Below, in pieces: positions 11,601-39,764 of a stretch of DNA of 64,000 nucleotides (position 1 is the stretch's first letter; each line of letters begins with the position of its first letter). Position numbers and translations under genes: made by a program. Source of the stretch: Macrostomum lignano (Eukaryota); the NCBI GenBank assembly GCA_002269645.1, contig NIVC01000362.1, positions 310,001-374,000 on the forward strand, written 5' to 3'. The notes beneath the pieces were generated by a model. That model was given only the letters and a program-made list of their open reading frames with translations. It was not told the DNA's origin and did not search any database.

Positions 11601-12441
11601 GCTTCTATGATTTTTATATAACGCTTCTACGATTTTTACATGACGCTTCTATGATTTTTTACGTGACGCTTCTATGATTTTTTACATGACGCTTCTATGA
11701 TTTTTTACATGACGCTTCTATGATTTTTTAAATGACGCTTTTATGATTGTTTACATGACGCTTCTATGATTGTTTACATGACGCTTCTATGATTCATTAC
11801 ATGACGCTTCTTTTAAAAAAGTCTTTTAGTTTTCCTGACGTTGAAAAGCTTTAATTAAAAAAATTATACTCTATGAAAATTCGAACCATCGTCGCTGCAT
11901 TTAGCAGTTCAGTTTGTTCACCTCTAGGCTAGCTCTCATCGTTTTGATAACATCAAATTTTGCACTTATATAATTCAACATTTTAAAATCCAAGCATAGA
12001 GTAAATCACACGAAGCAGTTATGACATAATCAATTTCTCAGTCAGTCAGTATCAGTTAACAATATGGTTACGCAATTTAAATCAAGTCTGGTGCTAGGCT
12101 TCCACACTGCATTTTCAATTCAAGTCGGAGTTACAATTCAGTTATGATGCAATCTATTTCAGAGTCAGAATTCAACCAGTCAGTTTTTTCTCTAGCATTC
12201 TTACAATGCATTTCAAGTCAAAAAGTTTGCTTGACCTTTGCAAAAAAGCATGTTTTTCGAATATTTAATGCCTTTAGCATTGAGCAATTTCTTAGCCACG
12301 ATGCATGTACCGTCACGGGAAAATTTCTGATCGAACAGTGCAAGTTCGAACAAAATCGGTCCAGCCATTTTTTCTCTAATCGATCACATAGATAGATAGA
12401 TAGATAGATAGACACAGACAGACCATTTTTAGTATATAGGA
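8677..12441 (-). mobile_element. Non-autonomous Helitron unit B1
   Basis: CTAG at 8677-8680 with a hairpin; 5' TC at 12441. (GATA)n/(GACA)n microsatellite near the 5' end (12388-12422). Internal duplication ~9380-10298 versus 10299-11812. Same 23 bp minisatellite as A1. Confidence 0.85.
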
Positions 12442-15400
12442 CTAGCAATCTACGCCCCCCGTTGGGGAGCCAAAGAAATGCAATACACGTTTTTTTAATA
12501 AGCTACATGTATCCTTGAAATCTTAAAAAATCTCCTGTCAAACCTTGTAAGCCTTGACATGTCAGTAATTCCCCCCACAAGCTTTAACATATCAACTTCC
12601 CCCCCCCCCTGACATCTCAGCAATGCCCCCAATAAGCCTTGAAAATCTAAAAATATCTGTCAACCTTCTAACCCTAACCCTAACCCTAACCCTAACCCTA
12701 ACCCTAACCTAACCCTAAAGCATTGAAATTTCAGTAATTCTCTCTAAGAGTCATTATAGCACTACTACAGCATTATAGCGATTCCCTGCAAGCCTCGACA
12801 TCGTAGGGATTCCCAAATGAATCTCTTAACTTCGACATGAAGCTTCTTTTATTTTTTACATTACGCTTTTTTTATCAGCGATCCCTCCCCTGAGGAGGCA
12901 TCAAATAATGTAATAAAAAGTTTTCAATAAACTACATGTAGCTTCTGGCCTTAGCCTTGAAATCTCATTTATACCCCAGTGAGCCTTGACATCTCAGCTA
13001 CTCCCCCCGTAAGCCTTGACATGTCAGCGATGCCCCCCATAAACCTTGAAATCTAAAAAATCCCCTGTTAACCTTGAAACCCGATAAAATATAACCCTCA
13101 ACCCACACCTGACCTAAACCTAACTTTAACCCAACCTAAAGCCTTGAAACCTCAGCAATTCTTCTCCCCTAAGCCTTGACATTTTAGTGATTCCTTCTTT
13201 AAGAATCACAGCACTATAACGATTTCCACCAAGCTTTGACATCCTAGCAATTCCCAAATGAATCTTTTAACTTCGACATGACTTTTCTTTTATGTATGCA
13301 TAGTGCTACTTTTATTTTTTACATGACTCTTCTTCTATCAGCGCCTCCCCCCGTGGCGAGCCAACAAAAAATGCAATAAAAAAATTGAGTAAAGTACATG
13401 AACTTTGAAGTAGCTTCTGACTTTTGCTTTGACATCTCAGAAACGCCCCCATAATCTCAGTTATTCTCTGTGAGCCTTGACGTCTCAGTTTTTCTCCCCA
13501 GCACAGCATTATAGCTGCATTTAATTTTTACATGACACCTTCATGTCTGACATGACGCTTCTTTTATTCTACCATGATGCTTCTTAATTTTTTAAATGAC
13601 ACTTTCATTAGTCTTTAAATGAGGCTTCTATGATTTTTCATGACGCTTCTATGATTTTTACATGATGCTTCTATGATTTTTTATATGACGCTTCTATGAT
13701 TGTTTACATGACGCTTCTATGCTTTTTAGATGACGCTTCTATGATTGTTTATATGACGCTACTATGATTTTTACATGACGCTTCTATGATTTTTACATGA
13801 CGCTTCTATGATTGTTTACATGACGCTTCTATGATTTTTTACATGACGCTTCTATGGTTTTTTATGACGCTTCTATGATTGTTTACATGACGCTTCTATG
13901 ATTGTTTACATGACGCTTCTATGATTTTTACATGGCGCTTCTATGATTGTTTACATGACGCTTCTATGGTCTTTACATGACGCTTCTATGATTTTTTATA
14001 TGACGCTTCTATGATTTTTTTACATGACGCTTCTATGATGGTTTCATGGATGAATGAATAGAATGGATTGCTATTCTGGCTCTGGCTATTTTCGTTTTTG
14101 ACTCTTTTGCATCCGGTTCCCCCGTGCCTTTTCATTGGTTGATGATTGCCATAGACAATTTTCGGCCTTCGCCCCTTTCTTTCGATGCACAAGCGCAAAG
14201 AACTGAGAATTTCAGTTACTTGCAGAGAATATCGAGCGCTCGTAGGTCTTCCCCCTTTATTTCAAAACACGAGCGAAAGCGCTTGTGCATCGAAAGAAAG
14301 GGGCGAAGGCCGAAAATTGTCTATGGCAATCATCAACCAATGAAAAGGCACGGGGGGGAACCGGATGCAAAAGAGTCAAAAACGAAAATAGCCAGAGCCA
14401 GAATAGCAATCCATTCTATTCATTCATCCATGGATGGTTTACATGACGCTTCTATGATTTTTTACATGACGCTTCTATGATTGTTTACATGACGCTTCTA
14501 TGATTTTTATATGACGCTTCTATGATTGTTTACATGACGCTTCGATGATTTTTACATGACGCTTCTATAATTGTTTACATGACGCTTCTATGATTTTTTA
14601 AATGACGCTTCTATAATTGTTTACATGACGCTTCTGTGATTTTTTCATGACACTCCTATGATTTTTTCATGACGCTTCTATGATTGTTTACATGACGCTT
14701 CTATGATTTTTTTAAATGACCCTTTTATGATTTTTAACATGACGCTTCTATGATTGTTTACATGACGCTTCTATGATAGTTTACGTGACGCTTCTATGAT
14801 TTTTTACATGACGCTTCTATGATTGTTTACATGACGCTTCTATGATTTTTATATGACGCTTCTATGATTTTTTACATGACGCTTCTATGATTGTTTACAT
14901 GACGCTTCTATGATTTTTATATGACGCTTCTATGATTGTTTACATGACTCTTCAATGATTTTTTACATGACGCTTCTATGGTTTTTTTATGACGCTTCTA
15001 TGATTTTTTTAAATGACGCTTCTATGAGTTTTATATGACGCTTCTATGCTTTTTACATGACGCTTCTATGATTTTTTACATGACGCTTCTATGATTGTTT
15101 ACATGACGCTTCTATGATTTTTTACATGACGCTTCTATGATTTTTTTAAATGACGCTTCTATGAGTTTTACATGACGCTTCTATGATTGTTTACATGACG
15201 CTTCTATGATTTTTTTAAATGACGCTTCTATGATTGTTTACATGACGCTTCTATGATTTTTATCTGACGCTTCTATGATGGTTTACATGACGCTTCTATG
15301 ATGGTTTACATGACGCTTCTATAATTGTTTACATGACGCTTCTGTGATTTTTTCATGACACTCCTATGATTTTTTCATGACGCTTCTATGATTGTTTACA

Positions 15401-17042
15401 TGATGCTTCTATGATTTTTTTAAATGACCCTTTTATGATTTTTAACATGACGCTTCTATGATTGTTTACATGACGCTTCTATGATAGTTTACGTGACGCT
15501 TCTATGATTTTTTACATGACGCTTCTATGATTGTTTACATGACGCTTCTATGATTGTTTACATGACGCTTCTATGATTTTTTTAAATGACGCTTCTATGA
15601 TTGTTTACATGACGCTTCTATGCTTTTTACATGACGCTTCTATGATGGTTTACATGACGCTTCTATGATGGTTTACATGACGCTTCTATGATTGTTTACA
15701 TGACGCTTCTATGATTGTTTACATGACACTTCTATGATTTTTTACATGACGCTTCTATGATTTTTTACGTGACGCTTCTATGATTTTTTACATGACGCTT
15801 ATATGATTTTTTACATGACGCTTCTATGATTGTTTACATGACGCTTCTATGATTTTTTACATGACGCTTCCATGATTGTTTACATGGCGCTTCTATGATT
15901 TTTACATGACGCTTCTATGATTTTTTACATGACGCTTCTATGATTGTCTACATGACGCTTCTATGCTTTTTCCATGACGCTTGGATGATTGTTTACATGA
16001 CGCTTCTATGATTTTTTCATGACGATTCTATGATTTTTTACATGACGCTTCTATGCTTTAAACATGAGGCTTCTATGATTTTTTACATGACGCTTCTATG
16101 ATTGTTTACATGACGCTTCTATGATTTTTTACATGACGCTTCTATGATTGTTTACATGACGCTTCTATGATTTTTTACATGACGCTTCTATGCTTTTTAC
16201 ATGACGCTTCTATGATTTTAGATGACGCTTCTATGATTTTTAACATGACGCTTCTATGATTGTTTACATGACGCTTCTATGATTGTTTACATGACACTTC
16301 TATGATGGTTTACATGACGCTTCTATGATAGCTTACATGTCGCTTCTATGATGGTTTACATGACGCTTCTATGATTTTTTACATGACGCTTCTATAATTG
16401 TTTACATGACGCTTCTATGATTTTTTACATGACGCCTTTTGTCCTTTATTTGACCTTGAATAAAAGCTTTTAATAAAAAACTTTTCACTACTAAGATTCG
16501 AACCCAGGTCGCTGCATTTGCAGTCCAGTCTGTTCACATCTAGGCTAGCTCTTATCGAATTTTATAAATGAAATTGTAGCACTTATATAATTCAACACTC
16601 ACTCACGAAGCAGTTATGACATAATCAATTTCCCAGGCAAGTCAGTATCAGTCTCTATTAAAGTTGACAATATGGTTACGCAATCTAAATCAAGTCTGGT
16701 GCTACGCTTCCACACTGCATTTTTAATACTGTGACGCAATTCAAGTCGGAGTTACAATTCAGTTATGATGTAATCTATTTCAGAATCAGAATTCAACCAG
16801 TCAGTTTTTTCTCTAGCATTCTTACAATGCATTTCAAGTCGAAAAGTTTGCTTGACCTTTGCAAAAAAGCATGTTTTTCGAATATTTAATCGCTTTAACA
16901 TGGAGCAATTTCTTAGCCAAGATGCATGTACCGTCCCAGGAAAATTTCTGATCGAACAGTGCAAGTTCGAAGAAAATCGGTCCAGCCATTTTTTCTCTAA
17001 TCGATTGCGTACAAACAAACAACTCAATTTTAGTATATAGGA
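12442..17042 (-). mobile_element. Non-autonomous Helitron unit B2
   Basis: CTAG 12442-12445 directly abuts the TC of B1; 5' TC at 17042. (TAACCC)n at 12669-12717; 23 bp minisatellite at ~13545-16438, interrupted by a MITE. Confidence 0.85.
14045..14432. mobile_element. 388 bp MITE with ~152 bp terminal inverted repeats and an 8 bp target-site duplication (hAT- or P-like)
   Basis: Left arm 14045-14196 (CATGGATGAATGAATAGAATGG...) is the reverse complement of right arm 14279-14432, apart from a 2 nt G-run difference. GATGGTTT is duplicated at 14037-14044 and 14433-14440. Confidence 0.92.
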
Positions 17043-18735
17043 CTAGCCATTAGCCCCCCGCTGGGGGGCCTTATAAATGACACCAAGTGGTTTTTATTTT
17101 GGTCCAATGGTAACCATAATTACCATTTCCATTAATCAAAAATTACTTTTTCTCATTTTTGCAAAAGCAAAAACTTATCGGCCAAAAGTTTCCATCCGCC
17201 CAAAACCCTTTTTTTATTAGCACAAGGTGCTTATCTTTTGAAGCACAAACTCAGCACCACTCACCTTAACAACACTTTTCCAAGATTAACACCGCTGCTC
17301 AGATTAGCAACGCTCCTCAGATTAGCACTATTTACCCCCCCCCCCCAGATTAGCACCGCTCCTCAGATTAGCACTACTTCCCCCCCAGATTAGCACCGCT
17401 CCTCAGATTAGCACTACTTCCCCCCAGCTTAGCACCGCTACTCAGATTAGCAATGCTCCTCAGATTAGCACTACTTCCCCCCAGCTTAGCACCGCTACTC
17501 AGATTAGCAATGCTCCTCAGATTAGCACTACTTCCTCCCAGATTAGAACCGCTTCTCAGATTAGCAACGCTCCTCAAATTAGCACTACTTCCCCCCAGAT
17601 TAGCACCGCTCCTCAGATTAGCACTACTTCCCTCTAGATTAGCACCCCTACCCCTAAATTAGCACTCCAGATTAGCAACGCTCCTCAGATTAGCAACGCT
17701 CCTCAGATTAGCACTACTTCCCCCAGATTAGCACTACTCCTCAGATTAGCACTACTTCCCCCCAGATTAGCAACGCTCCTCAGATTAGCAACGCTACTCA
17801 GATTAGCAACGCTCCTCAGATTAGCAACGCTCCTCAGATTAGCAACGCTCCTCAGATTAGCAACGCTCCTCAGATTAGCAACGCTCCTCAGATTAGCACT
17901 ACTTCCCCCCCCAGATTAGCACTACTCCTCAGATTAGCACTACTTCCCCCCAGATTAGCAACGCTCCTCAGATTAGCAACGCTCCTCAGATTAGCACTAC
18001 TTCCCCTAGATTAGCACCCCTACCCCTAAGTTAGCACTCCAGATTAGCAACGCTCCTCAGATTAGCACTACTTCCCCCTAGATTAGCACCCCTACCCCTA
18101 AATTAGCACTCCAGATTAGCAACGCTCCTCAGATTAGCACTACTTCCCCCAAGATTAGCACTACTTCCCCCCCCCAGATTAGCACTTCTCCCCCCAGATT
18201 AGCATCGCTCCTCAGATTAGCACTACTCTCGCCCAGATTAGCACCCCTACCCCTAAATTAGCACTCCACCCAGATTAGCAACACTTTACAAGACTTTGTC
18301 AGTAATGGTCTCTGAAAATTAGCGCATACAATAGACTTGCACTGCTGTAGAAGATTAATGCAGTCTCAGAATAATATAACTAAATGAACATTTCGAAAAA
18401 TCTGCGTCAATCTGCATTGGAGGTGACATCAATGTTGTCACAAGTTATGGGGATAAATTTTCTACTTCAATGCAGACTCGAATTGCCCACCATCTGCTTT
18501 GCCTCTACAACGCGGCTATTTTCGAAGAGAAGCCTTTACTGCTCCCTTGAGAATTCTCATTCATCCCCCCAGCATTCTGCAGTTCTCCAAGCAAATATTT
18601 GAATTTTTAAAGTAAAATCCTTGAAGAATTTTGCAAGTTTAGAAAAAAACGCGATCAAATTTGGTTGAGGCATTCAGTATTAAATGCGTCATTCACAAAC
18701 AGACAAACAAAGGTAGGACTTTTAGTATATTAGAA
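17043..18735 (-). mobile_element. Non-autonomous Helitron unit B3 (second family)
   Basis: CTAG 17043-17046 abuts the TC of B2. Perfect 7 bp hairpin GCCCCCC-GCT-GGGGGGC at 17053-17069. 5' end TTCTAATATACTAAAA at 18735. AGATTAGCA-based 17-19 bp minisatellite at ~17283-18285. Confidence 0.78.
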
Positions 18736-20379
18736 AATTATATATTAGCACTATTTCCCCAGATTAGCACCACTCCCCGGATTAGCACCATTCCCCCAAA
18801 AGTAGCACCACTTCCTTAGATTAGCACCACTCCCCCAGATTAGCACTACTTCCTCCAGATTAGCACCACTCCCCCAGATTAGCACTATTAGCACCACTCC
18901 CCAAAAATTACCACCACTCCCCCAGATCAGCACCACCCCCAGATTAGCACCACTCCCCAAAAATTAGCAGAACTTCCCAAAAATTAGCACAGTTTTATAC
19001 AAAATTAGCACCGCTCCCCCAGATTAGCACCGCTCCTCAGATTAGCATTACTGAGCCCCCAGACTTCCCCCCCCCAGATTAGCACCACTACCCCTAATAA
19101 TTAGCACTCCTCCAGATTAGCACCACTCTTCCAGATTAGTAATGCTCTCTGCAAATTAGCACATACTCACAATAGATTGGCACTGATCTAAAAGATTAAT
19201 GCAGTCCCAGAATAATATCATTCAATGAAAATTTCTAAATTTCAAAGTTATAGGGATACTTTTCAGCTTCAATGCAGACTCCAATTGCCGACCATCTGCT
19301 TTGCCTCTACAACGCGGCTATTTTCGAAGAGAAGCCTATACTATTCCCTCAAGAATTCTCATTCATCCCCAAGCATTCTGCAGTTCTCTTAGCTGGCTCC
19401 TCAGTCTCAGCAAACTTGCAATGATCCTTTCAACAATTTAAAACATTTCTCAGCATTTAGTACGACTCATTAATCAGTGTTCGATACATATCGGCGGACT
19501 TTTGCACAACTCAGGATTTAGCTGTGCCTATGCCTTCAGCAGTTTAGCAGCATTGTCTGCATTTTAGCACTTTCATACTTTAAATGGAGCTAGGCAACAC
19601 CCATTGATGAGATCAGCCAGACTTGAAGCAGTTTTACAAATCAACTTTGCTTAGTGGCTTGTGCCGATTAGCAAAAATAATTCATTGCTTTACTTAATAA
19701 AAAAATTTCCATCGCTATTAATCAATATCAATTGAAAGATGTTCTAATTAGTCCATGCATAAGTTACAAATAAATATAAATTAATTCAAATTTAATTGTT
19801 CGCAGCGAGGTGGATTCGAACCTGGGACCTTACGCCTAGCCTAAACCTAGTGCCTACATGCGGCTACTCCGCCTATTGATGGAAAGGCGAGAAAATCAGC
19901 CATATAAGCTTCGACACTGCAGTCAAATACATAGCAGTGATAGGCTGCTCAGTGCGCAGGCAGAGCCAATGCACAGTTGAGTGAAATCTATAAATAGCAA
20001 TTGTCTATGCAGTCCGCCATTCAGCTAGGGTCAGAGGAATGTACACACAGCCACTGAGCATTTTTTCTCTCCCTTGCACACTGTAGCCAGTATTGAAACT
20101 TAGAGAAAAAAGTTATGGCGCAATCTCAATTGGAGTTTCAATTCAGTCAGTCGAGATTTTGACCTTTTCTAGCCTCCCATTAAAAGCATAGGGAAAACTC
20201 GTTTTTCGAATATTTAATCCACTTAGCACGGAAGCAAATATTTGAAAATTTTTAGGTACAATCCTTGAAAAATTTTGCAGGTTTAGAAAAAAACGCGATC
20301 AAATTTGGTTGAGGCATTCAGTATTAAATGCGTCATTCACAAACAGACAAACAAAGGTAGGACTTTTAGTATATTAGAA
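18736..20379 (-). mobile_element. Helitron unit B4 (same family as B3, lacks 3' hairpin/CTAG)
   Basis: The last ~80 bp (20300-20379) are identical to 18655-18735, and 19165-19385 is homologous to 18330-18585. It has ~850 bp absent from B3, including a tRNA-like segment at 19805-19873. No CTAG at the junction with B3. Confidence 0.7.
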
Positions 20380-21654: not shown

Positions 21655-24600
21655 ATGGCAATCAGCTTGCAGAAGCAGACACATCAACCAGAGCTTCAAC
21701 AACTCCAGCAGAGTGGAGACGAGGCTGTAGAGGAGTTGAACACGATACTCAAGGAATATCACGTGATAACCGAAGGCGATCAGGAACTGTTCAACCAGCA
21801 CAAAGATGACAGAAAGGTCCGACTCACTCAGGAGAACATGCACAAGCTGAAGCCAGGAGACGTGGTCGAGCTTCGCTATTACACTCTGGTGCACTTCATT
21901 GTGGTTGAGGGCGTCAGGATTCTGCCGGATACCCCAGCCGACTTTATCATAATCGACGCCATTCACTACGGTCGGCCGAACTTGCTCACACCGAACAGGA
22001 TCATCAGAGAGAAATTCAGCCTGAGACTCAACACAGAAAAGTGCTGGCTTCAAGTGTTTCCTCCCGCCAGCTGCTACCCGTCTCAGACAGTGCTGCAGAG
22101 AGCTCGGAGTAGACTCAATGAAGAAGAGCACAACGGAATCTCCAACAATGCGACAATGTTTGCCTTGTGGTGCAAGGTCGAATCAACAACTCACCGTCCG
22201 AGCTGTCGGGTTCCAATCTACCTGTCAAATAAGCATCCCACTCATACTGTCAAAGAAGGTGATCATATCGATATTGAATGTTCAGTTGGTAAAGCTTCTG
22301 AGATTCATGCAGAGGTCACAGGTGTTGAACAGGTCCTTGATGATTCGTATCTGGTTACAATTGTAACCCGAGAAGCAGCCTGGATTCCATATGTTCACGA
22401 GTGTGAGCACGTGCTCACAGAGCCCGTCAGTCGGGTGATTTCAATGACGGACAAGAAAGAGATCGTCGAGCTGAGTGATCGAACTCAATTTTTGGACCGG
22501 GTTCTTTATCCGGTGTCCAAGCAGTCGAGTTTATCGTTTTGCTCGCTACTGCTGAGTGCTGAGCACCAAGGCGATGAGTGGCAACGAGCTGCTCTGCAAG
22601 GTCCAGTGAAAAAGTGTGAACCCAGAGTGTTGACTGGGAAACAAAATCCTAGCCTCTTAAAGCCAGGTGACATCATTCACTTGAACGGCGTGTACCGAGT
22701 GGTCACTGATGTGAGAGCAGTTGAGTCGGGCATTCGAGTCCGCACCGTGCAGTACTGCCCAGGGCCAGATTCCACCGACAGTGGCGAACTGATGGAGCTT
22801 AAGTGCCGGATTCTAAAACAAGAAAAACGCATTTCGCTGTGCGTTCACAACGAAGTTCACCAGGATTGTGAGCTGTACGGAGGAGGTCGTGAGAAGCCCA
22901 GCTACACAGCCACAAGGGTTACAGATATTAAGCAAGTAAAAAAAGGCTGTGTGATAAGCCTTCGGAATGAGTATAGTTTCTTCAAGCATGCAGTAGTTAT
23001 AGAAACTTTTTCTGAAGAGGCAAAAACTACTCGACTTGTAGAGAACCCAAATCGAAGGCCAAACGCAGGTGATGAAGATGTGGCAGAGTCTCCGATTCCA
23101 ACCGCTTTGACGGATCACGCGAATATTGAAAGCCGTGCAGAGCAGGCTAGAATGGGCGAAGAAGAGGCAGCTGTAGAAAATGATACCGGTACAAAACTTG
23201 TCTGCAAATTGATGTCATTCGTGTTGAGTCTTTCTATCTCAACCCAACAGTTCCAATTAAAAACCCATTGTATGGAAATTGATATTGATGAGCAAAGCAA
23301 GCAGGATGTACACCTCATCGATTACAATGTCGAAGCAAGCAGAAAGTTCTCGCCCGACAAGGTCGTCAAAAGAGCGTTGTCAAGACTTGGTGAGCGAGAG
23401 CACGACTTTCTGTGGAACAGTGATCGCGACTTCGCCAGGTGGTGCAGCATTGAGCACGGAAGCAACCGAGAGCAATGCCGCATCGACATCGAGTGTGCAA
23501 AGGACTTGGTGAACTTCGGTAGAGGTCACATCAAGTTTCTCAAGAGTCCAAACTTGTACACACACGATGCGATCATGCGAGAGTGCAGTAAGTTTGAAGA
23601 TTCCGACGACATAGTAAAGGTTCGCTTGTACGAGAACAATCACCAGTTCAGGACCGTCAGGAAGGAAGTCTTGGTCATCAGTCAGCAGGAGACAGTTCTG
23701 AGAGTAAACTACGATGGGTTCAGACGGTCTGAATCAGTCATGCCTGACAGCAAAGTCATCGATCAGCTCACGGACTGCACCTTTTTGAACGCGGATGATG
23801 ACAGGTACGGTTGGACAGGGAAGGAAGTGAAGTATGACAGCAAAGTCACCAGCCACGACTTCTGCCACTGGCTGAAGTGCAAGAGACAAGGCAAAAGTCT
23901 TGGCGATATTGCAGAACTTTTTGATGCTAAACTTGAAAAAATTCAAAAAGATGCTGCTAGGCTTGATGAGTTGGGTTTTGTGAGTTTGGAGCAAGGCAAA
24001 ATTTCTCAAGAATGCGTGCTGAGGGTTTCCAGTTTGAGGCAGTTTGATCACATTGTGCTGGACCGTAAGGTGCAAGGCAAAGTGACCAAGGTGCACTTCA
24101 TTCTTGTCGAATGGGATGCAGAGTCGTGCACAGGTGTAGGCGTGACTTATGAAGCTCCAGCTGAGAATGTGGAGATGGGATTCAACGAGTTCAATGGATT
24201 TCTTCGAGTGACTGGACCGGGTCAGCTGAAGAAGGTGGTGCACAACACTGAGCTTGACTGGGAGAAGATTGATGCCAAGTTCAAGGACTGTCAAGGCGCA
24301 AGGAACTACGATCTGCTGTTTAATAACTGTGAGCACTTTGTGAACTTTCTGATCTACGGCCGATTCACGAGTCTTCAGCTCAGCGACTGGGCGCTGAGGG
24401 CGACGTCCGCTTTTCCTTCCTTCGCTGTGTCGTTCTTCAAGGGCATCGGAAAGTTCGCAAATTTAATCAACCGAGTTATTCAGTTCTTTGCAGACATTAC
24501 CCCAGCCGTTCCTGATGGCAAAACATTCTGGAGTGAAGGCTTGGGTCTCGTTTTTATCATTGGCTTCAGTGCCTTGGAAGCTGCTGTTTTGAAATTCCGC

Positions 24601-24813
24601 AAAGCCACAACGGGAATGCCTGAAGATGAGTACCGCCAGCGGCGGAAATGTCTGCTGAGCTCACTGGTCTCCACAGTGGTGGGTCTATTGGCTGCCATTG
24701 ACATTGGCACGACAGCCGTGCTGCCTCTGACTGGCATCGCCATTGCGTCGGCGGGGATCGGCCATCTGGCTCCACGGGTGCCTGCCATTGTGGAATCTAG
24801 GTGGAAGCCCTGA
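21655..24813 (+). CDS. Intronless 1052-aa protein with multiple LRAT/NlpC-P60-like (PLAAT/HRASLS-type) domains and a hydrophobic C-terminus
   Basis: Canonical YDLLFNNCEHFV..YG...S.Q motif (Cys codon 24328-24330). Degenerate copies: KPGD...VHF...IHY...VLQRARSRL..EH...NNATMFALWCK (~21850-22176) and KHAVV...VVKRALSRLGEREH..WNSDRDFARWC (~22950-23445). Further GD-x-H starts are present. The C-terminal ~130 aa contain Gly/Ala-rich hydrophobic stretches. Confidence 0.85.
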   Translation: MAISLQKQTHQPELQQLQQSGDEAVEELNTILKEYHVITEGDQELFNQHKDDRKVRLTQENMHKLKPGDVVELRYYTLVHFIVVEGVRILPDTPADFIIIDAIHYGRPNLLTPNRIIREKFSLRLNTEKCWLQVFPPASCYPSQTVLQRARSRLNEEEHNGISNNATMFALWCKVESTTHRPSCRVPIYLSNKHPTHTVKEGDHIDIECSVGKASEIHAEVTGVEQVLDDSYLVTIVTREAAWIPYVHECEHVLTEPVSRVISMTDKKEIVELSDRTQFLDRVLYPVSKQSSLSFCSLLLSAEHQGDEWQRAALQGPVKKCEPRVLTGKQNPSLLKPGDIIHLNGVYRVVTDVRAVESGIRVRTVQYCPGPDSTDSGELMELKCRILKQEKRISLCVHNEVHQDCELYGGGREKPSYTATRVTDIKQVKKGCVISLRNEYSFFKHAVVIETFSEEAKTTRLVENPNRRPNAGDEDVAESPIPTALTDHANIESRAEQARMGEEEAAVENDTGTKLVCKLMSFVLSLSISTQQFQLKTHCMEIDIDEQSKQDVHLIDYNVEASRKFSPDKVVKRALSRLGEREHDFLWNSDRDFARWCSIEHGSNREQCRIDIECAKDLVNFGRGHIKFLKSPNLYTHDAIMRECSKFEDSDDIVKVRLYENNHQFRTVRKEVLVISQQETVLRVNYDGFRRSESVMPDSKVIDQLTDCTFLNADDDRYGWTGKEVKYDSKVTSHDFCHWLKCKRQGKSLGDIAELFDAKLEKIQKDAARLDELGFVSLEQGKISQECVLRVSSLRQFDHIVLDRKVQGKVTKVHFILVEWDAESCTGVGVTYEAPAENVEMGFNEFNGFLRVTGPGQLKKVVHNTELDWEKIDAKFKDCQGARNYDLLFNNCEHFVNFLIYGRFTSLQLSDWALRATSAFPSFAVSFFKGIGKFANLINRVIQFFADITPAVPDGKTFWSEGLGLVFIIGFSALEAAVLKFRKATTGMPEDEYRQRRKCLLSSLVSTVVGLLAAIDIGTTAVLPLTGIAIASAGIGHLAPRVPAIVESRWKP

Positions 24814-25877
24814 AGGCATCGACACAATTGAAGCTGATTTGCTTATCATAGCAAATCCCTATTTTGCAGCGTCGAGTCAATAGTTTTTTATTGGATCGAA
24901 CCTTCTAATCAAAAGATGTCGTTTGTGCTTTGAAGTCGTTTGTGCTTCACTTATCTTTTAAACTCAAACTTATAATCATACATAGTTTTCCATCTCCAAT
25001 GGACCTAACATCTGTGTGTCAAATCTACTTCGATCGATTTTTGTTTTTGTGCACAGTTTATTGACTTGCTTATTAATGCAAACAAGATACAGTTACCAAT
25101 TTGAATCACATGGTATAGAAGTTTCATTATAAAATTATTATTTATCATTGGAGTTTTGGCCTAGCGTTTAATAAGTGTAATACATTTTGACTTAATTTCC
25201 CATGTAGTAGCTACTCGTACTCCATGCAATAAATTTGTTCAAAATAAAGAATTGAAAAAGTAACTACCAACCTAAAATTTGTTTGTTTCATTTCTTAAAG
25301 TCAGATACGTGCAGTAGTAAATGGTCGAGTTTTATCAAATGTAGCTTTTTGAAATGCCTTGATAATTTGTTCCTTCCATAAAGTATTTACAGGTACGATA
25401 GCCTAACTTGGTACATGTATCTATGTATCTAATACACATGTCTTAATTAGATCAACTCACTGAGACCGATAGAACAAAATAGAGACTTTATACATGTACA
25501 TGTACACATATGCTTCCTATATACTTCCCTATAAACCTCTTAGACAAAAGGGGATGATAGGGGGTGGAGAGAGCGGTGTGTGTAGGAGCGATCGAGTCCT
25601 CGAAGTAAAGAGGATTTGTGATCTCAGAGTCTGGACCAAGTATTCTTGTGTTCGCAAACTTGGGATAATGACATTAGGAAAAATGAGAGGCCTCTCTTCG
25701 TGATAATTATTCTGTCTTAATTTTTTCAACAGAGGGATATACTAAGAACTTAACTTGCATGTACAGTACTTAAGTTATTCACATAAGTGTAACATACAGA
25801 AGTAAATAACTTAAGAAAATTCCTGCCTCTTAAAAATGTCTACTCGAATACTTGAGTAGCTACCAGGTGTCTCGTTT

Positions 25878-28607
25878 TAAATCCCAAAGGAAAAACGCAG
25901 AGTAAAAGCAAGTGGCACAAAAGACCGGCACACCGGCTCTAAGCCCCGCACGCAAGCAGGGCACCCGCACCCAACCAACCCACGCACCCAACCAACCCAC
26001 GCACCCAACCAACCCACGCACCCAACCAACCCACGGGTCTAAAACCCGAGGGGGGTTTTAGACCAGTTAAAGTCAGATACCTGCCTCAAACTGACGTATT
26101 AAACCCCAAAGGACAAACGCAGAATAAAAGCAATTGCCGACCGCCGCGCTGCTGTCGACGTAGCAGGCCACCTTGCCGCCGGCCAGCTTATCCTGGAATA
26201 TAATGATGGCGAGCAGCGGCGCAGTACCGTCTCCTTGGCGTTGATACATGTATGCTCGCTCAGGAAGATGTCGCCGGCGTAACTGCAAAAGTTGACGAGG
26301 CGGAACTCGGCGCCGGCCAACAGAGGTGCTCAGGATTATGCCACCGGTACTAACGCAGGCGTCTGTCTCGACCGCTGCCAGCACTCGAGCACGTCGCCAC
26401 AGCTTTTCGGTCAGGAACACTGGAATTGCATGTTGCCAGAACTGCAACTGGGCCAGCAGCTCGCCGCGCACCAGTACTCGATGATTCTGCTCGGGAACAG
26501 CGATGGTAATCTCCATTAGCGCGCGGAGCATGGCCTTTGCAGGTTCGGTCACTTTGCAGAACAGTTCAGTTTGCCGAATAGGTGCTGAAGGCGACGTTTT
26601 TGCAGGCTCCTTGAGTTGGCGCAGTCCTGGAGAATTTATTTAAGGCCGTCCATCTTCTTGGTGGGCATGCAGCGACAGCAGGCCAAGTCGAGCTGCACGC
26701 CCAGGAAGGTGACCGAAGTGGCTGGGCTCTGCGTCTTGACCCAGTTGATCTGAAAGCCGAGGCCCTGCAAGGTGGCCAGCAGAAAATTGTGCAGCTGCAG
26801 ACAGACCATGCAGAATCGTCAAGGTAGGCGATGACGGCGAAGTTCGGCAGATGCGAGAATTGTCTGTACATGTAGCGCTTGACAGCTTGCGTTAGGCGGT
26901 GGAATATGTGGAATAGGACCGATGCCGCCACACCGAATGGGAGTCGCGTGTCAACCAGGTAGGTTGGCTGACCGTCCAGCTCGAACGCCCACCTGAGGCC
27001 CGTTGCCTGGTAGCAGTCTGGGTGCACCTGAACGCTTCGGTGGGCGTGGCGATCGGTCGACCTTGCTGAGGAACCAGGGCTCCTGGTGCCAGCTGCCTGG
27101 TGAGATCCTCGACACTGGCAAACTTCTGCTTCTGGCGGGGCTTGTACAGATCGTTGAGACTGTTGCCCTGTGGCAGCAGGGCCGGCAGCAGGGCTGGCAG
27201 CAGGGCCAGCAGCAGGGCAAGCGACAGGGTGATCGGCAAAGCGAGAGGCAGGGCGAGTGGCAACGCAAGGCGAGCTGTCTCGCATGGAATTAAAATATTT
27301 AACTGTCTAGCAGACGCCGTCCGCTTAGGGCTAAAACTGGTGCCGCCGCGACCCGCCTCTCTGATCAGTTTTTTGATTCGGCAGTCACCGAACTGTGATG
27401 CAGCTTTGAGTGGCTCCCTTCCACAGATGCGGCAGATGTGGGCGAAATTGCAGGTGTGTCTGTGATAGCCTTTGTTGCTATTGAAAAGGCCGCAGATGAC
27501 CTGTCCAGCGGATGACAGCTGACCCTTGCTCCTGTGCCCTTGGACTCCTAGACTGACCCCACTGGGCCAGCAGCTCGCAGGTTTTTGGGCGCCGTCATAT
27601 GCTTGATGATGAGGTTTAGATTGGGGCTGTCCCAGTCGCGCTGTCGCGAGTGCTGCTGCAGCCTCATGTCCTGGCCGTACTGAAGCACCACCTTCCAGTC
27701 GTAGCCAGCGTCGATCAGCTCGCAGATGTGGATGTTGAAGTTGAGATAGGCGCTCAGCCGGGCTGTCCATCCGTACCGAGCGCCACCAGCTGGTCGGTCT
27801 CCAGCAGCCGCTGCATAATGCGCGCGTTGGCAGCCACCCACTGGCCAAAGTTGACTCCAAACACGCTCGGCGTTGCGCCTTTCCGAGTCAGGCGACCACG
27901 TTCCTGCGTCAGCAATCCTCCCGACAGCTGCCTTTTGTCCAGGTAGTCCGGGATGAGCAGCGCTGAGGGGGGCCGCTGGGCTCCGGCCGAATCAAACCTC
28001 GGTTGTCGGCTCTGGCCCCCGAACAGGCTGGCGTAGATGTCCGGCTCTCCTCTGGCCAGCGGGGTCGATGCAGAGCCACCGCGGATCGACTGCACTTCTT
28101 CTCGCTACTGAGACTCAGCCTTCTGCAGTTTCAGCAGCTCGATCCTCTTCTGAGTCTGCCAAATCTGCACCTCTGTGGCCTCCTCCACTGGCGCAGGCCG
28201 GGGCACGTCATCTTTGTCCTGATCGTCGTCGCCGTCGTTGTCGCTGGGAGCGCGTTCGGCCTGGCTTGCAGCGTATCAGCTCTTCTTTATTGCCACTTGT
28301 CGGTAAGGCCTTCTCGCGTAAGCTGCATCTTTGAGGGCCTGCACGGTCATGCTGTCTAGCGTGGAGTCTATTGTGAGTGCAGTGCTTGGAAAGTCAGGCA
28401 GGCGAAAAAAATATTTTGCCAAAATTACGCCGACTCAGCGGCCTATGACTAAATAGCATAGAGTGGTGAGGGGAGGGGTTAGCTCTACCCAGGTAAGCCC
28501 CGCACGCACGCAGAGCACCCAAATAACCCACCAAAGCGAGGATAGGCCGGCGCGGGGGCCGTTTAAAACCAGTTAAAGTCAGATACCTGCCTCAAACTGA
28601 CGTATTA
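25878..28607 (-). mobile_element. Internally deleted Ngaro-like (DIRS-order) retrotransposon with split direct repeats
   Basis: Gag-like fragments (LLIPDY..QWVAANARIM; ELIDAGYDWKVVLQY; zinc finger ICGLFN...TCNFAHICRICG at ~27405-27480). RT: LPFG, AYLDD at 26815-26829, then after a frameshift LLATLQGLGFQINWVKTQSP..TFLGVQLD. RNase H: VETDAC, CINAKE, CYVDS. An identical 40 bp repeat A lies at 28568-28607 and 26062-26101, and repeat B at ~26100-26133 and ~25878-25911, giving A1-ORFs-B1-A2-B2. No tyrosine recombinase is seen. Confidence 0.85.
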
Positions 28608-29088
28608 TCACGTACGAGTATGAAGCGCATGCACTTACTGTACATGTATACATGTAAGCAATCCTTGACTCCTTACCGAGCTGTCGGTTGCACATTTGCC
28701 CATTAAGACAGGTGCATGTACTATAAAATCATCCATTTATTATTATTATACAGCATATGTACAGTTACATAAGTAAATCTTAATTCAGCTAATGCAGCGA
28801 TAGCTACAATAAAAATTATATGTACATTATAATAATTATGCAATGCATGCATGTATCCCGTGTGCGACATCTCCGTGCACGATATCTCCGACATGTCCTT
28901 GATCCGACGTACATGTGTATATGTAAACCCGGTGTCGATAGAACCTTGCAGGCTAATACGTTTTTTACATATTACCGACGGATCCGCCCGTCGAGCTGTG
29001 CTTTCCTTGGCTTATCAGATCTTCCGGGTGGCGCCGGGGATCGCCGAGGCTCACTGTCATTGAGCCCTTAGCCGTACCACAGGGCACG

Positions 29089-29620
29089 CTCCGGGTCAGG
29101 ATGCTGAACTGCCGCACTCTCAAGGCCGCCGCGAGAAGAGGGCTGCTGGCGCAGCTAGCGCTCGACTCGCAGTCAATGTCAAAGTCATCTCCCTGCAAGA
29201 GGTGTCCGTCAGGGCCGACCCGGGAATTCACTGTGAGGACCTAGGCGCCGGTTGGACCCTCTGGTACACGTCAGCGGAGCAACTATAGGCCGTGGAGGAG
29301 TTGTTGGAGCGCTGATCGGACCGAAGCTGCAGCAGAGCTGTCGCTGCATCTTCCCTGTCTGACCGGCTGCTTCGGGTCGACGTCCGGCTTCGTGGCCGGA
29401 ACCCTTGCCTGTTCTAAGAGTACGCGCCTCCTGCCACCCGACCTTGACGAGGCTCAAGTCTTCTTCGAGCAGCTCTCGTGACACAGTGGTCGTCCCTCGG
29501 AGACCTGAACGCGGTTTTGCGTAGGTCCGACCGATCAAGCGGTCGCTGTTTGTGACACCGCGCGCGAGAACAACAACTGCACCGGAGCGCTGGAGGACTT
29601 CCTAGCTGGAGAGGCAGGAC
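29089..29620 (+). mobile_element. Degenerate non-LTR retrotransposon (LINE) APE endonuclease fragment
   Basis: Across frameshifts and stops: LRVRMLNCRTL, VISLQEV, GGVVGALI, LSDRLLRV, YAPP, VFFEQLS, LGDLNA (~29496-29513). This is the ordered motif set of APE/EEP domains of RTE/CR1-like elements. Confidence 0.8.
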
Positions 29621-32498
29621 ATGGCGCCGTCAACTGCCGCACCATCACGCCGCTGGCTCTGCGACCAACCCTCACGGCATAAATTTAAACATGACACCCT
29701 TCGACGCAATTCTCAACGGCTCCCTCGATAGCACGAACACGAACCCTTTGCTGAATTTAGCTTGAAGTGTTAGTTTAGTTAATTATTTGTCCCACTAGCA
29801 ATTGAACAATGGATGGCAGGCTCTGCACTCTGTCTTTCCTATATTTTCTATTCGCCAAGCGATCTAAATGTACCGGTGGGTGCAGCAGCAGGGCCTCCAG
29901 CGAGCCTACTTGGCTGATCCGGCAACCCCGGGAGTTCTGCCGCATGCTGATGGCGCACTGCCCGGGTACCTGCCAGCAGAACACGCCCATGGTAGAAGGC
30001 CTGGCCCAGTCTGTTGCCGCGCGGATGTGCAGTCGACGGGACTCCTCGACCTGGCTGAGTACATTTACGTCGATCGGTCAGCAGCTGCACGTACCTGGCT
30101 GGAGAGTCCATGCAGTGCCATGCGGAAGATCAGTGTGTATCGCCAAGCGATCCGGACAAACAGCGAAGTAGAACGACCGGTGCCTGAATAGCAGAGGATG
30201 GAGCACACTCACGATGACGCTCTACCCGCTGCTGGACGTCCTGCACAAGGATCGTGGCTTATCTGGTTCCAGTTTACTGATCTGCCTTGGTGAGCGAGCA
30301 GGCCGCTCAAGAGTGCCAACACAAGTTGCGTTATCAGCAGCTTCTTCAGGAGTCGGCAGAACGCAACTGGACCAGCTAGATATCAAACCGGCTAGGTCTC
30401 CATGCAACAGCAGCTTTTCTGCTCAGCCGAAGCCGACGACAGCACTGTACACATCCCCACTTTCAGTGAGCTGGTGAACAAAGATGATGAAACTGCATGT
30501 TTTAATCGCCATTCATTTTATTATACTTTTCTTTGACAGCATATACGATTGTCTGCAGCCATATTTATTTTACAAGCGTAAAAACCAAAACAGTTTTTCC
30601 ACTCTCTCTCCGATCCTCTCGGTCCCTACATGTATGCGCAGCTGTCTCGATCCTTGCGTCCTTGCGCCTTTATGTCTTTGTCTTTGTGGCTTTGAGCTTT
30701 TGCGTCTTTGTGTCATAGTTCACGTGTATCTTGCATTTTTGCCCTAAACTACAGCATATTACTTTACATGTACATGTACATGTACAAAACGACTGCATGC
30801 ATGTATTGTAAATCTATAATTGTGGTCTAACTCCGCCAAGTCGACCAGATCTGGTCCCAAGTCCAGAATGAGAAAGGATCAGAGAGGGGAGATTATTTTC
30901 AAAGCCTTGAAGTCTCACAGTTCAGCCTCAGTTTTTACATCTACATGTATACTTGTACTTAGCAGCAACTGTAATTGAGTGTACAATATAGCTTAATTTT
31001 TATTATTGCAGGTTGAATTGAAAAACTGACCAAACTTTAAAGCATGACGATTGGCTGGATGACGAAGTGTCCTATCTTCGAGTGGATTACGAAAGTGTAA
31101 GATGACAAATTTGTAAAGATGACGAAGTGTCTATATAAACTGACAATGTAAGGCAGCCGGTCTCATACTTCTACACTGGTCATGCTGAATACGCCTGCGC
31201 AATCATTGGTAACCATCTATTTTAAGTAAATTATTTTAGGTAGACCGAGTTTAATACATTGCTTTTTAACTGGCACAAAATTGGTTATAAAACAGTAATC
31301 CTAGAGAAAACTTTGTTTAATTGCGAACGTATTTGCGTCCTGTTTTTAAACTATTCATGCTGTTACCGTTATCTGATGCTTTAACAATAACGGGCCCTTT
31401 ACAGACGTGGCAGAAGTTAAGCCAATTAAAGCTGTTTTAACTTTGTTCATTGATGATTTTTTCTTGTCTAGGTCAAGACAAACGTCAAATGCAAATGCCA
31501 GGATGACATGGGTCAGTACATGTTAAATACTGAACTGACCCATGTCATAGGCCTATTGTTTTGTTTAATATGTTAAAAAACGGTGAAATTAATTAAATGC
31601 AGTAAACTAAAAGATTGCCTGTAAATGCAAGGGTCTTGTAAATTTTATGGAAACCAATTCTGTTGACCAACATTTTTTGTTGATACAGGGATTAATCTTT
31701 TCTGGATTAAGATAAAGGTACTAGATAGGAGTCATAATTTATACTTGTAATTGAGGCCTAGTACTAGTAAGGCTAGGCCTAAGCCTTAACATGGCCGCAA
31801 TTACTCATTAGCATTATCAGGCCTTTAGGTTTTGAAAGCTTGTTGCCTTCTCTTTATGGGTGCAGCCCATTTTGATAGAAATTTTTGGCAAAAGATAATT
31901 CATTGAAAGTGAATATTTAATTTATATAGATCATATAGGATGTACATTTCAGCAATAGAAAGTGACCAGTTTTGCAAAAAGATAGGCTACTTATGATTGC
32001 ATTGCAAATATAGTACTTTGATAGCCTAATTATACTTTTCAATAAATTTGTAGTATGGTGCATTTTATTCTAGAATTTAATAATATTTTAATTGTATTGC
32101 TAAATTGAATTCCTGCCAAAAACTTTTTAAAACATGGTCATTTGTGTAACTACATTATTTGAATATTTGTTTTATTTAGGCAAAGTTTGTTTTATTGATA
32201 TAGCTATTTTTGTTATTTAGTCTGCTATGCCTAGCAAGGAATAAGGAGACACAAAGTGTGGCAAAAAAGATTACAAAGCTGGCCAAAACCTAGCACAAAG
32301 CAGAAAGAATGAAAAACAAGACAGAATGAAAGCAAATGACTAGTGTAGGCAACAGGAGCAAAGGTTAGCCAGAGAAGGCACAAACCAAGTTAAAGCAAAT
32401 AGCCAAAACACAAAAATTAAAGCGATGAAAATCAGAAAACAAGCAGACATCGCAGCCAAAAACTTGCATAAGGCAGCAAAACCCAGCTTAAAGCTTGG

Positions 32499-35400
32499 TA
32501 GATAGAACTACATTGCATCACTGTGCGAATCACTGATTTGCTACACTTCTGGATCCAATAGACCAAGGCGAGAGGCCCAAGTAACGCCTCTCCTGTGTAG
32601 GCTATGAGCTATGAGCAAGGAGTTACAACCCACGCCTTGCAACATGCAAGCTATCAAACTGCCTAGCAACCAGAGGCAACACTCTGCCACCTAAGCTGCT
32701 AGACCAAAGATGCTGTTCAGGTCTAGACAGGCAATTAAGGTGGACATGCAGCTGGATCACTGCTAGGCCTACTAAACAGAGCAGATGTCCTAGGTAAAGC
32801 TCTGAAGTAGTAGCACACTATGCCAGCACTCCTTAAACTAGATTGTCTTGTCGTAGCCTAGCTGCAGCACAAGCCCTGCTAGGTGAGGCTGCAGGTTGCA
32901 TAGTAGCACCACCAGTTTGCCACCTGGGGAGCAAGGCAGCAAGCTTGACTTCCTCAGCACACCCCACCAAGCCAAGCACAAAGAGTGAAAGGCGAGAGCC
33001 CAACAGGCTACCCCAAGGACGCTTGATGTATTCAACTGATCTCAAATTGCCAGATCATCCAGAGACAGAGGGAGCTTCTGGCTTGGCTGAAAGCCAAGCT
33101 TGCATTTGGCACCCCTTAGCAGATGCTACATTGAATCTCCCTTTGTATGGTCAATGCTGCAATTCAGATAGAACTGGAGAGACAAGGTGCTAGCATGACA
33201 TCTTAGGCTTCTAAAGCTCTTAAGGTGCGACTCGGTAAGCCCTGCTAGATAGTTTAGAAATGTCATCTCGCAAAACATAGCTGGTCGTGGCCAAGTGTCT
33301 TGCAGTGCAGAAGCCACGATCGAATCTGCAAGCTGATCACAGAGTACAACCAAGGGGCGTAAGCGTAAGAAGCACTTAGAAGCTGGGTGGCGCGTGTGCT
33401 CAAAAGCCTTGGTATAGCCAGGTGACCTGAAAAAGGAGAGAAGTGGCAAAACTGCGGCTGATAACATGGGATAGAAAGGTCAACAAACTCTTTACCAATG
33501 TCCTGCTCTCAGCTGATGTAATGCCAGTCTGTCCAGCCATCAGAGGAGTGGATCACAGCTGCAGCACCCTTTTTGCAGGAGTAAGATTCTTTTGCCACAA
33601 AATTAAAGGGGATTGGCCAAAGCTAGTGCCACTAGGCCATCTGCAGCGCAGCCGTTTACCAGTTCAGCTAAGCACGCAGCCTATCATTGATACAAGTCTG
33701 GTGGTAATGGTGTGCTAGCCAATTGTAGCGCTGGATCAAATCTTTCAGGAAAGATCTCCCATGCCAAAGGACCTGAGCAGCCCAATTCAGCTTGCTGATC
33801 AGTTGCTAGAGGCATTGCTTGGAAACACAGGGCTATAGATGAGACAAGGTTGATAGTTAGCAAAATCTGCACAACCTTCTTGGCTAGTAATCCTATTTCC
33901 CAGTCACAGAGTCAAATTTTATGCCTAGAAAGTTCATACGCTGGGTTGGCCTGATGCACTTGTCCCAGTTGACTATGAAGCCAAGTCTCTGAAGCAGAGT
34001 AGGCAGCTGAGCAAAGAATTGCTTGCAATGGTCCAATGAGCCACAGAAGGATTAATGAGTCATCCAGGTATGCCACAGTTTTAACAAAGCCGCACTTGAT
34101 CATCATCAGTTTAATGGCATTGCTAAGCTCATAAAAACACCTAACTGATGTGGCTGCACCAAATGGAAAGCAGGTGTTGACCATGTAGATATCCAAATGC
34201 TACTTGTCAGGCCAAAATTTGATTCCCGTAAGCGGAAACTCACTAGGATAGAGGCTGCATGACCAGTACACTTCCCAGAGGTCAACTTTGCACATAGAGT
34301 TGCCCAGGAGCAGATGCCCAGTGAAGTCCTGCGCTCTAGCAAACTGCAACTTCCAGTTTTGCATATAATGATAATCATTCAAAGATTTTCCAATTGGCCA
34401 ACTGCTGTCATGAATGAGCCTAACAGAAATGCCGTCAGACTTCTGCACAGCTCCAAAGGCACTAACTATCAGCAATTTTTGTGACAAAAGTACAATTTTG
34501 TAGCACTCAAGAGCGATTTTGTGTTCAATCTAATGTTGGCAAGCAGAGTGCATACAAGAAACAGAACTGTAATTTCCGACCTCAACCTGCTTAGTCAATG
34601 GAGGATTAAAACTCGTGACCAAAAAGCCTTTAGATATTTAGATATTGCTAGCCAAATTGAATAGCTTCAGCAAATCGACACTGCTGATCTCTTCTATCCA
34701 CACAGCACAAACAAGGTCAGACAATAAAACTTTGGGGATAAAATAGTCATCAGGAATTCAAATACTCTGCGTTGCTTCCTCTTTATGGCTGAGTATAAAG
34801 TATAGAGTGTTGGCCACCACACTTGCAGCAGTGATGGGTATACCGGCACACTGCCCTTGTATAGCCGGAGGTTTTGTTGAAATCAAAGCAGATGGTCAGG
34901 TACCAAGAAAGGCATTTTGTTGTTGTCACTGAGTTCTGCCATGGTGGTGCCATCAGATACAAAGCTGCAAAGGTAATATCCAAGCTATGCAATTGCCATT
35001 GAGTAGGGCTGGTCTGGCTAAGCCAATACTCATCATCCAGACAGAATTCGAGAACACTCAAATCCAAGGTCAAGAGGTCACCAATCCAAGCCATGTACCG
35101 CAGGTATTCACAAAGCTCAGATACATCAAAACCACCATCAGCGCTCGACTGGACTAACCTACCATCCCATAGCATCTGCAGCATAGTGTTGGCATTCCCT
35201 GTAATCCAATTGCCCATTGACATATTCTCAACAGCCGCCTTTTTCTGCTTTAGGCTAGTCTTGCTGGGCTTGTCCTGTCCTTCTGGAACACCAAACTGTC
35301 TCAATTTTCTTTGGCTAATGAAATCAATCACGTAGTAGTTCTTGATATATGCTATGCTGTCCTTATACTGCTACTAGTTTTGCTAGTGCCATGGGAAGGG

Positions 35401-39640: not shown

Positions 39641-39764
39641 AAGTCATGGATTATTGCACAACCTGAGAAAGCAATTATTGCATTAGCAGAGGAAATATTT
39701 GCACTAGCTACTTGCTGTCTGGTGGATGCTTGCTTGTTTGCTATTGTATCTGGGGGATGCTTGA

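Follow-up and report, generated by a model that had tools for sequence, protein, structure and literature searches.

How many copies of an enzyme fold a single protein can carry, and how many of those copies can still be capable of chemistry, is the question raised by a long open reading frame (ORF) of the flatworm Macrostomum lignano. The stretch of DNA analyzed here, referred to as the window, comprises 64,000 nucleotides (contig NIVC01000362.1 of assembly GCA_002269645.1, positions 310,001 to 374,000, forward strand); the ORF occupies positions 21655..24813 (+) of the window and encodes 1052 amino acids in a single exon. An initial annotation of this DNA had described the product as a series of LRAT-like repeats lacking the catalytic cysteine, followed by one domain that keeps it and by a membrane anchor. 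From the Pfam matches, the states of the catalytic residues, profile-profile alignment, and the pattern of substitution among paralogs, this architecture can fairly be described as an array of pseudo-enzyme modules joined to a single domain that may be active. The favored reading, to which a probability of about one-half can be given, is that the ORF is a working Macrostomum gene whose product is a C-terminally anchored, cytosol-facing, PLAAT-like protein with six repeated LRAT/PLAAT-type (permuted NlpC/P60) modules, the non-catalytic ones serving as a scaffold.

Direct evidence for repetition is provided by searches with hidden Markov models. Over its whole length the protein scores 58.9 bits with Pfam LRAT (PF04970), for which the cut-off is 24.3, and the score is distributed over three stretches, so that the prediction of at least three clear repeats is borne out. 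When the six modules, lettered A to F from the N terminus, are scanned singly, A and D fall below that cut-off and F exceeds it (scores and coordinates are collected in the table below). By this direct criterion the number of LRAT domains is three (A, D, and F). Modules A and D also align directly with each other in hhalign (97.9% with 6-sequence alignments, 99.7% with 10-sequence alignments), indicating homology over their full length. For modules B, C, and E the Pfam scan gave nothing credible, even with B and E of every paralog scanned as well. The best match for module E in the Pfam and Protein Data Bank (PDB) searches, to the HamA C-terminal domain at an E-value of 0.019, was taken as chance.

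A broader comparison required relatives of the protein. An exhaustive HMMER search of 1.84 billion representatives returned 114 matches, many of them matching module A several times each, and a further homolog search with an 11-sequence profile found four proteins, all already known. From the HMMER relatives, a profile of the LRAT-like repeat was built by iterated hmmsearch (E-value ≤1e-3), comprising 373-380 repeats. A direct hmmsearch of the window protein with this profile recovers modules A and D together with the C-terminal part of F. Profile-profile alignment with it also detects B at 96.4% over 104 columns, E at 95.8% over 102 columns, and C at 92.9% over its first 63 columns, with observed scores of 38-64 compared with at most 18.3 for 40 column shuffles per module and 9-12 for reversed alignments. 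As this first profile had taken in a few Macrostomum segments of B, C, or E type, the test was partly circular. The profile was rebuilt from 249 strong LRAT-like repeats of non-Macrostomum proteins without similarity to B, C, or E, and hhalign against this version gave 99.9% for A, 94.4% for B, 90.1% for C, 99.7% for D, 90.6% for E, and 96.3% for F, with scores of 35-182 against a maximum of 16.3 over 30 column shuffles each. These alignments would place five full LRAT-derived modules (A, B, D, E, and F) and one half module (C) in the protein, about 5.5 in all, a count that structure searching does not yet confirm. Module C ends ahead of the helical half of the fold. Module E carries a 16-residue insert (TFLNADDDRYGWTGKE), and its helix motif S-x-D-F-C-H-W-L-K resembles that of repeats with a His-His-Ser (H-H-S) arrangement in bivalve proteins.

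Structure prediction is informative for only part of the protein. A full-length AlphaFold model (6-sequence alignment) has a predicted local distance difference test (pLDDT) score of 39.5 and is unusable for counting folds or for the geometry of the catalytic triad. An AlphaFold 2 (AF2) model of modules B and C together (residues 186-420, 10 paralog rows) is confident, with a pLDDT of 82.9 and a predicted template modeling score of 0.81. In this model, B consists of five strands and then three helices, and C is all-beta. The fold of the LRAT/PLAAT family combines a four-stranded antiparallel sheet with three helices and has its cysteine at the N terminus of a helix.

Several results weigh against the favored reading, and they concern first the number of modules. 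PDB profile searches with B, C, and E gave no meaningful match, and a Foldseek search of PDB and BFVD with the B+C model yielded no PLAAT, LRAT, or NlpC/P60 structure at an E-value below 0.1, giving only local matches of 40-70 columns to BAH, Tudor, SH3-like, and small-barrel proteins (probability up to 0.87). The alternative to which these results point is that A, D, and F are the only LRAT domains and that B, C, and E are unrelated, for example SH3-like barrels with helical extensions, their weak profile similarity reflecting shared composition or the periodicity of strands. It is consistent with this alternative that Pfam, iterated hmmsearch at the threshold given above, and the PDB profile searches all detect A, D, and F only, and that direct module-versus-module hhalign, with 6- or 10-sequence alignments, detects only the A-D pair, leaving B-E, B-F, and E-F not significant. 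That last comparison has no power for B, C, and E, however, because A and F fail in it too although both match Pfam LRAT; a BLASTP search of the protein against itself, which gave only the identity match, was likewise uninformative. Shared composition or strand periodicity is harder to reconcile with the scores of B and E against the clean external profile (90-94%, ~100 columns, scores 38-44), which lie well above both the shuffled (≤16.3) and the reversed (9-12) controls. Nor does it account easily for where the conserved residues fall: His-637 of E aligns exactly with the conserved first catalytic His and His-218 of B within one residue of it, while the F-C-x-W helix of B and E aligns with the bivalve NRS-x-HFCHWAK helix, that is, with the helix that bears the cysteine. 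In the AF2 model, moreover, Ser-292 caps the N terminus of a helix and His-218 lies in the second strand, as an LRAT topology needs. On balance a protein with just three LRAT domains is unlikely, and the suggestion of up to about six repeats in the initial annotation is upheld for B, E, and half of C by the controlled profile-profile comparison, whereas the structure search has lent it no support.

The second question is whether any module can act as an enzyme. All of the motifs quoted in the initial annotation are present: VHF (H80), IHY (H104), and NNAT (A166) in module A, NSD (D590) in module D, and VHF (H814), VTY (T831), and NNCEHF (C892) in module F. Across ten Macrostomum paralogs, a cysteine at the nucleophile position is found in module F only, where the permuted order, with H814 ahead of C892, is observed. 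A cysteine in module A of the paralogs P0003 and P0004 (IANCGT) was considered as a catalytic residue and rejected, as it lies one residue before the nucleophile site. Module A is the only one of the six to keep a histidine at the second position. In the PLAAT/HRASLS enzymes the cysteine is the nucleophile, the first histidine acts as the base, and the third residue, a His or an Asn, serves only to orient that histidine (PMC4624172).

Against catalysis by module F stand three further points. Its confidence in the full-length model is only pLDDT 25-40, so that its geometry is not checkable there; the second histidine is missing, with Thr-831, beside the conserved Tyr-832, at that position and Thr rather than His or Asn in 8 of the 10 paralogs; and in P0003 and P0004 an Asp replaces the first His. 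The missing second His and this Asp suggest that F is perhaps not a standard enzyme. Taken further, they lead to a reading in which the protein is wholly non-catalytic, F being one more pseudo-enzyme in a structural or adaptor membrane protein comparable to inactive LRAT-domain proteins; the loss of the cysteine in the paralog P0010 fits such a role, and Thr at the third triad position has not been described for active family members (PMC4624172). Yet that position varies among active members, being Asn in HRASLS1 (PMC4624172), and as the third residue does no more than orient the base, Thr in F is compatible with activity, which itself is a prediction. The pattern of conservation also speaks for a retained function: C892 and the NNCEH motif around it are invariant in 8 of the 10 paralogs, the paralog P0007 ends just before the cysteine, H814 is likewise kept in 8 of 10, and F is the most constrained module (dN/dS, the ratio of nonsynonymous to synonymous substitution rates, 0.13-0.26). 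That F has lost all catalytic capability is therefore regarded as doubtful.

If F is active, the type of reaction may still be asked. LRAT belongs to the NlpC/P60 superfamily, and F could in principle be a cysteine peptidase or amidase, of classical NlpC/P60 or PPPDE type, acting at the membrane to cut peptide, isopeptide, or amide bonds. A weak match of F to Peptidase_C97 (PPPDE; E-value 0.022) and weak Amidase_6 matches of the bivalve relatives point in this direction, but both fall below the curated cut-offs. Module F instead has the exact PLAAT motif NCEHFV in the permuted order, and of the nine sequence matches found for it in PDB, eight, although weak (E-values 0.03-1.3), are to PLAAT2, PLAAT3, and PLAAT4 (PLAAT/HRASLS/LRAT-chimera chains), with PLAAT2 and PLAAT3 the best. 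The fusion of the catalytic domain directly to transmembrane (TM) helices is as in PLAAT and LRAT. A peptidase or amidase function is accordingly very unlikely.

The Gly/Ala-rich hydrophobic tail noted in the initial annotation is present. Hydrophobic windows on the Kyte-Doolittle scale occur only at residues 960-982 and 997-1040, corresponding to two or three helices, with an amphipathic helix ahead of them, and Gly and Ala make up 27% of the C-terminal tail. No N-terminal signal peptide was found in the hydropathy analysis, the N terminus being hydrophilic. By analogy with the PLAATs, which carry a C-terminal TM anchor (PMC4624172), this arrangement would leave some 950 residues in the cytosol ahead of a C-terminal multi-helix anchor.

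Whether the cysteine-less modules are maintained can be judged from the closest annotated relatives, two M. lignano proteins listed as hypothetical and "LRAT domain-containing." P0002 (BOX15_Mlig011640g2) is 85% identical to the window protein and P0001 (BOX15_Mlig032532g1) 82% identical; both share the A-B-C-D-E-F-TM order, the residue states, and the single-exon structure. The census of paralogs and the dN/dS analysis that had been proposed show many paralogs and an overall dN/dS of 0.32-0.40 against these two (Nei-Gojobori method; dS 0.13-0.23). Ratios for individual modules rest on few substitutions at this level of divergence, which is a further point on the adverse side, but as they stand they indicate that the modules without cysteine are clearly under purifying selection and not decaying. 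The idea that the ORF is no working gene at all, just a decaying duplicate or repeat-associated frame in a satellite-rich region, as the density of minisatellites in the window, the many paralogs, and the absence of the exact protein from the collections searched might suggest, is scarcely credible given 1052 unbroken codons, module-specific constraint, start, stop, and synteny conserved with annotated genes, and no internal tandem repeat that explains the frame.

Under the favored reading of a membrane-anchored protein with six LRAT/PLAAT-type modules, the likely origin of the architecture is the duplication of a unit of three modules, A-B-C and then D-E-F. The NCEHFV cysteine C892 and the putative general base H814 occur together only in module F, the one nearest the membrane. 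If F works as the PLAAT enzymes and LRAT do, it would draw an acyl chain from a glycerophospholipid of the membrane, carry it as a thioester on C892, and then pass it either to water, as a phospholipase A1/2, or to a lipid acceptor, as an acyltransferase. The five cysteine-less modules could form no such thioester intermediate, yet they are conserved; most likely they are non-catalytic binding, spacer, or regulatory parts that gate F or hold it in place at the membrane.

Table. Features of the poly-LRAT gene and its product. Window positions are nucleotides of the 64,000-nucleotide stretch; triad positions are given in the order first His, second His, nucleophile; dN/dS per module is against P0001 and P0002 and rests on few substitutions.
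Feature	Residues	Window position	Strand	Triad positions	dN/dS	Basis
Complete ORF with TGA stop		21655..24813	+			ORF scan; P0001 and P0002 genes single-exon
N-terminal hydrophilic Gln/Glu-rich region	1-54	21655..21816	+			Predicted helical, without signal peptide
Module A, LRAT-like (H-H-A)	55-192	21817..22230	+	H80, H104, A166	0.18-0.33	Pfam LRAT 20.2 bits, profile positions 2-117; hhalign 99.9-100%
Module B, divergent, probably LRAT-derived; conserved H204 and H218	193-325	22231..22629	+	First His H218; nucleophile position S292	0.44-0.66	hhalign 94-96%, ~100 columns, shuffle maximum score 15
Module C, N-terminal beta half only	326-418	22630..22908	+	Y347, Q366, no Cys-helix	0.12-0.17	hhalign 90-93%, 59-63 columns
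LCVHN-x6-C-x-LYGGG motif, end of module C	395-411	22837-22887	+			Conservation
Module D, LRAT-like (H-D-D), homologous to A, split by insert	419-612	22909..23490	+	H445, D556, D590	0.19-0.28 (core 2)	Pfam LRAT 19.9 bits; hmmsearch 421-457 and 508-613
Acidic low-confidence insert in module D	455-515	23017..23199	+		1.25-1.6 (about neutral)	pLDDT below 50; absent in P0003, P0004, P0005
Module E, divergent, probably LRAT-derived (H-L-S)	613-750	23491..23904	+	H637, L658, S733	0.23-0.50	hhalign 90.6-95.8%, ~100 columns, shuffle maximum score ≤16.3
Predicted helical linker	751-784	23905..24006	+			Long helix 750-772, low-confidence model; mosaic divergence among paralogs
Module F, canonical LRAT/PLAAT-type	785-915	24007..24399	+	H814, T831, C892	0.13-0.26	Pfam LRAT 31.5 bits alone
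Exact NCEHFV motif, putative nucleophile C892	891-896	24325..24342	+			Motif as defined in PMC4624172
C-terminal tail: amphipathic helix, then membrane anchor	916-1052	24400..24810	+			Secondary structure and hydropathy
Hydrophobic segment 1, predicted TM helix	960-982	24532..24600	+			Kyte-Doolittle 19-residue windows 1.5-2.0
Hydrophobic Gly/Ala-rich segment 2, room for two TM helices or a hairpin	997-1040	24643..24774	+			Kyte-Doolittle maximum 2.09 at residue 999

Two of these features call for separate comment. The LCVHN-x6-C-x-LYGGG motif, with which module C closes, shows strong conservation in the window protein and in P0001-P0005 and lacks an equivalent in LRAT domains; it may act as a strand for docking or as a small site for metal binding. 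The linker region (residues 751-790, window 23905-24024) is identical in protein sequence to that of P0001, whereas in comparison with P0002 it is saturated (dN 0.52; dS could not be computed) between modules that differ little, a mosaic that suggests recombination or gene conversion among paralogs.

At the level of the locus, the ORF begins with ATG, has in-frame stops upstream, and is the longest in the window, the runner-up (425 amino acids) lying within satellite. Its start codon is identical in place to those of P0001 and P0002, and the stop is conserved too. The window is collinear with the M. lignano contig NIVC01003294, on which P0002 is encoded, with 86% nucleotide identity for the poly-LRAT gene and 91.6% for a downstream gene with a TGS domain (window 40053-43800, +). 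This downstream region matches the M. lignano locus for a 382-residue TGS-domain protein (L001 19340-22522) and holds 18-bp and 33-bp tandem arrays that are presumably intronic. From these comparisons the window gene is best regarded as a separate copy (paralog, homeolog, or allele) of an M. lignano gene that is annotated but has not been studied.

The two genes are separated in the window by some 15 kb of repeat-rich DNA that is extra relative to the P0002 contig. This segment (window ~25400-40050), absent from the matching M. lignano interval (L001 13802-19249), includes a GC-rich block at 26-30 kb (55-58% GC) with overlapping minus-strand ORFs at 26566-27860 for which no Pfam match was found; the block may be a degraded mobile element. 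The rest of the window is mostly minisatellite arrays and AT-rich non-coding DNA. Arrays of 23-bp minisatellites with related units (~ACATGACGCTTCTATGATTTTTT), in up to 129 copies, lie at 2854-4176, 5086-8062, 9610-11811, and 13550-16435, and further satellites at 17283-19139, 38228-39659, 44447-45775, 53165-54803, and 56788-60095. The neighboring long ORFs of the window gave no credible Pfam match and are mostly within satellites, and those at 52-60 kb, which are sited in satellite arrays, are probably artefacts.

The other Macrostomum proteins indicate how the family has expanded. P0001 differs from the window protein in carrying about seven tandem copies of a 12-residue unit (VEGVRTLPDTPA) at residues ~85-165, in the module A loop that joins the two His strands, where the window protein (residues 85-98, nucleotides ~21907-21948) and P0002 each have one copy. 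Three more distant M. lignano paralogs show 36-43% identity. The same module order, with a C-terminal NCEH domain and TM tail, is found in P0003 and P0004 (1379-1382 amino acids), P0005, P0006, P0007, P0008, and, with the cysteine lost, P0010. P0003 and P0004 differ from the window protein in the Asp of module F described above and in having an additional N-terminal A'-B'-C' unit, which together with the homology of A and D suggests that the three-module unit is what duplicates. The more distant paralogs have introns, and one is in tandem with another family gene: on NIVC01001606 (L003 1-1384 and 6001-13101), two LRAT-family genes encoding 865 and 1379 amino acids are placed head to tail, the latter with introns. 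Introns and tandem placement therefore mark a gene family expanding in the ordinary way, rather than a retrogene or a mobile element. A retrogene, viral, or transposable-element origin of the window gene was rejected on the same grounds, along with its ordinary syntenic locus in M. lignano and the presence of no second copy in the window.

Outside Macrostomum, the named relatives are nearly all from bivalves (Mytilus, Potamilus, Mercenaria, Dreissena, and Ruditapes), the remainder being one amphioxus protein, and every one, the additional Macrostomum paralogs included, is annotated as hypothetical or uncharacterized. At least three LRAT-like domains are present in 60 of the proteins fetched. 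Across 380 repeats the commonest state is H-H-S (130), followed by H-H-C (63) and H-H-A (18). In the repeats of the bivalve proteins P0009, P0011, and P0014 both histidines are kept and the cysteine is replaced by serine (N-R-S); such His-His-Ser repeats might still be catalytic and are hence not necessarily dead.

A far-reaching extension of the favored reading would make the flatworm and bivalve poly-LRATs an unrecognized class of membrane-anchored effectors, in which arrays of pseudo-domains, their nucleophile position occupied by Ser, Ala, or Asp, bind ligands (lipids, or danger or pathogen signals) and thereby activate the one PLAAT-like domain to remodel or rupture membranes, as might occur in the clearance of organelles or in innate defense. 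A role in an arms race would fit because of the lineage-specific expansions in bivalves and Macrostomum, but the proposal as a whole is speculative and improbable, and the sensor, scaffold, and innate-immune roles suggested in the initial annotation are likewise speculation. More conservatively, the protein is a multi-domain variant of a known enzyme family, the variant being already in databases as hypothetical proteins; the present status is that of an annotation-level discovery of an uncharacterized family whose function is predicted. Literature searches on these gene identifiers, on Macrostomum LRAT, and on tandem or pseudo-enzyme LRAT proteins found nothing relevant. More than one LRAT domain was detected, and every relative of similar architecture is annotated as hypothetical or uncharacterized, so that neither of the two outcomes named in the initial annotation as telling against it was found. 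If the cysteine-less modules do bind lipids or regulate F, these proteins would offer a natural system for pseudo-enzyme control of a membrane-active acyltransferase or phospholipase, and as M. lignano is amenable to RNA interference and transgenesis, the role is testable.

Comparison with known systems places the protein at some distance from each. Within the LRAT/H-box-NC family, the picornavirus 2A H-box/NC proteins and the vertebrate LRATD1/2 proteins (FAM84A/B) have roles that are non-enzymatic or unclear. They are single-domain, and no specific similarity in sequence between them and the window protein was found, although no comparison aimed at it was made. PLAAT1-5 (HRASLS) and LRAT resemble module F in the NCEHFV motif, the first histidine, the permuted order, and a C-terminal hydrophobic anchor; they differ in being small, with one LRAT domain, one TM helix, and His or Asn at the third position, whereas the window protein has some 790 residues of cysteine-less modules ahead of F, an anchor of two or three helices, and Thr at the third position. 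The bivalve poly-LRATs (Mercenaria XP_053378500.1, Potamilus KAK3603616.1, and Mytilus XP_076105740.1) also combine one cysteine-bearing LRAT domain adjoining two or three TM helices with an array of cysteine-less repeats, and have an RARSRLGE helix and the F-C-x-W motif in common with the window array. Their main layout is an H-H-C domain, two or three TM helices, and a following array of H-H-S repeats that can number nine or more, so that the order is reversed in the window protein, and their cysteine-less modules are mostly uniform H-H-S, whereas those of the window protein are heterogeneous (H-H-A, H-D-D, H-L-S, and a half domain). A fold known in LRAT and the PLAATs from small single-domain proteins thus appears in Macrostomum to have been reused as a repeated non-catalytic building block, and the bivalves show the same idea with the parts in the opposite order.

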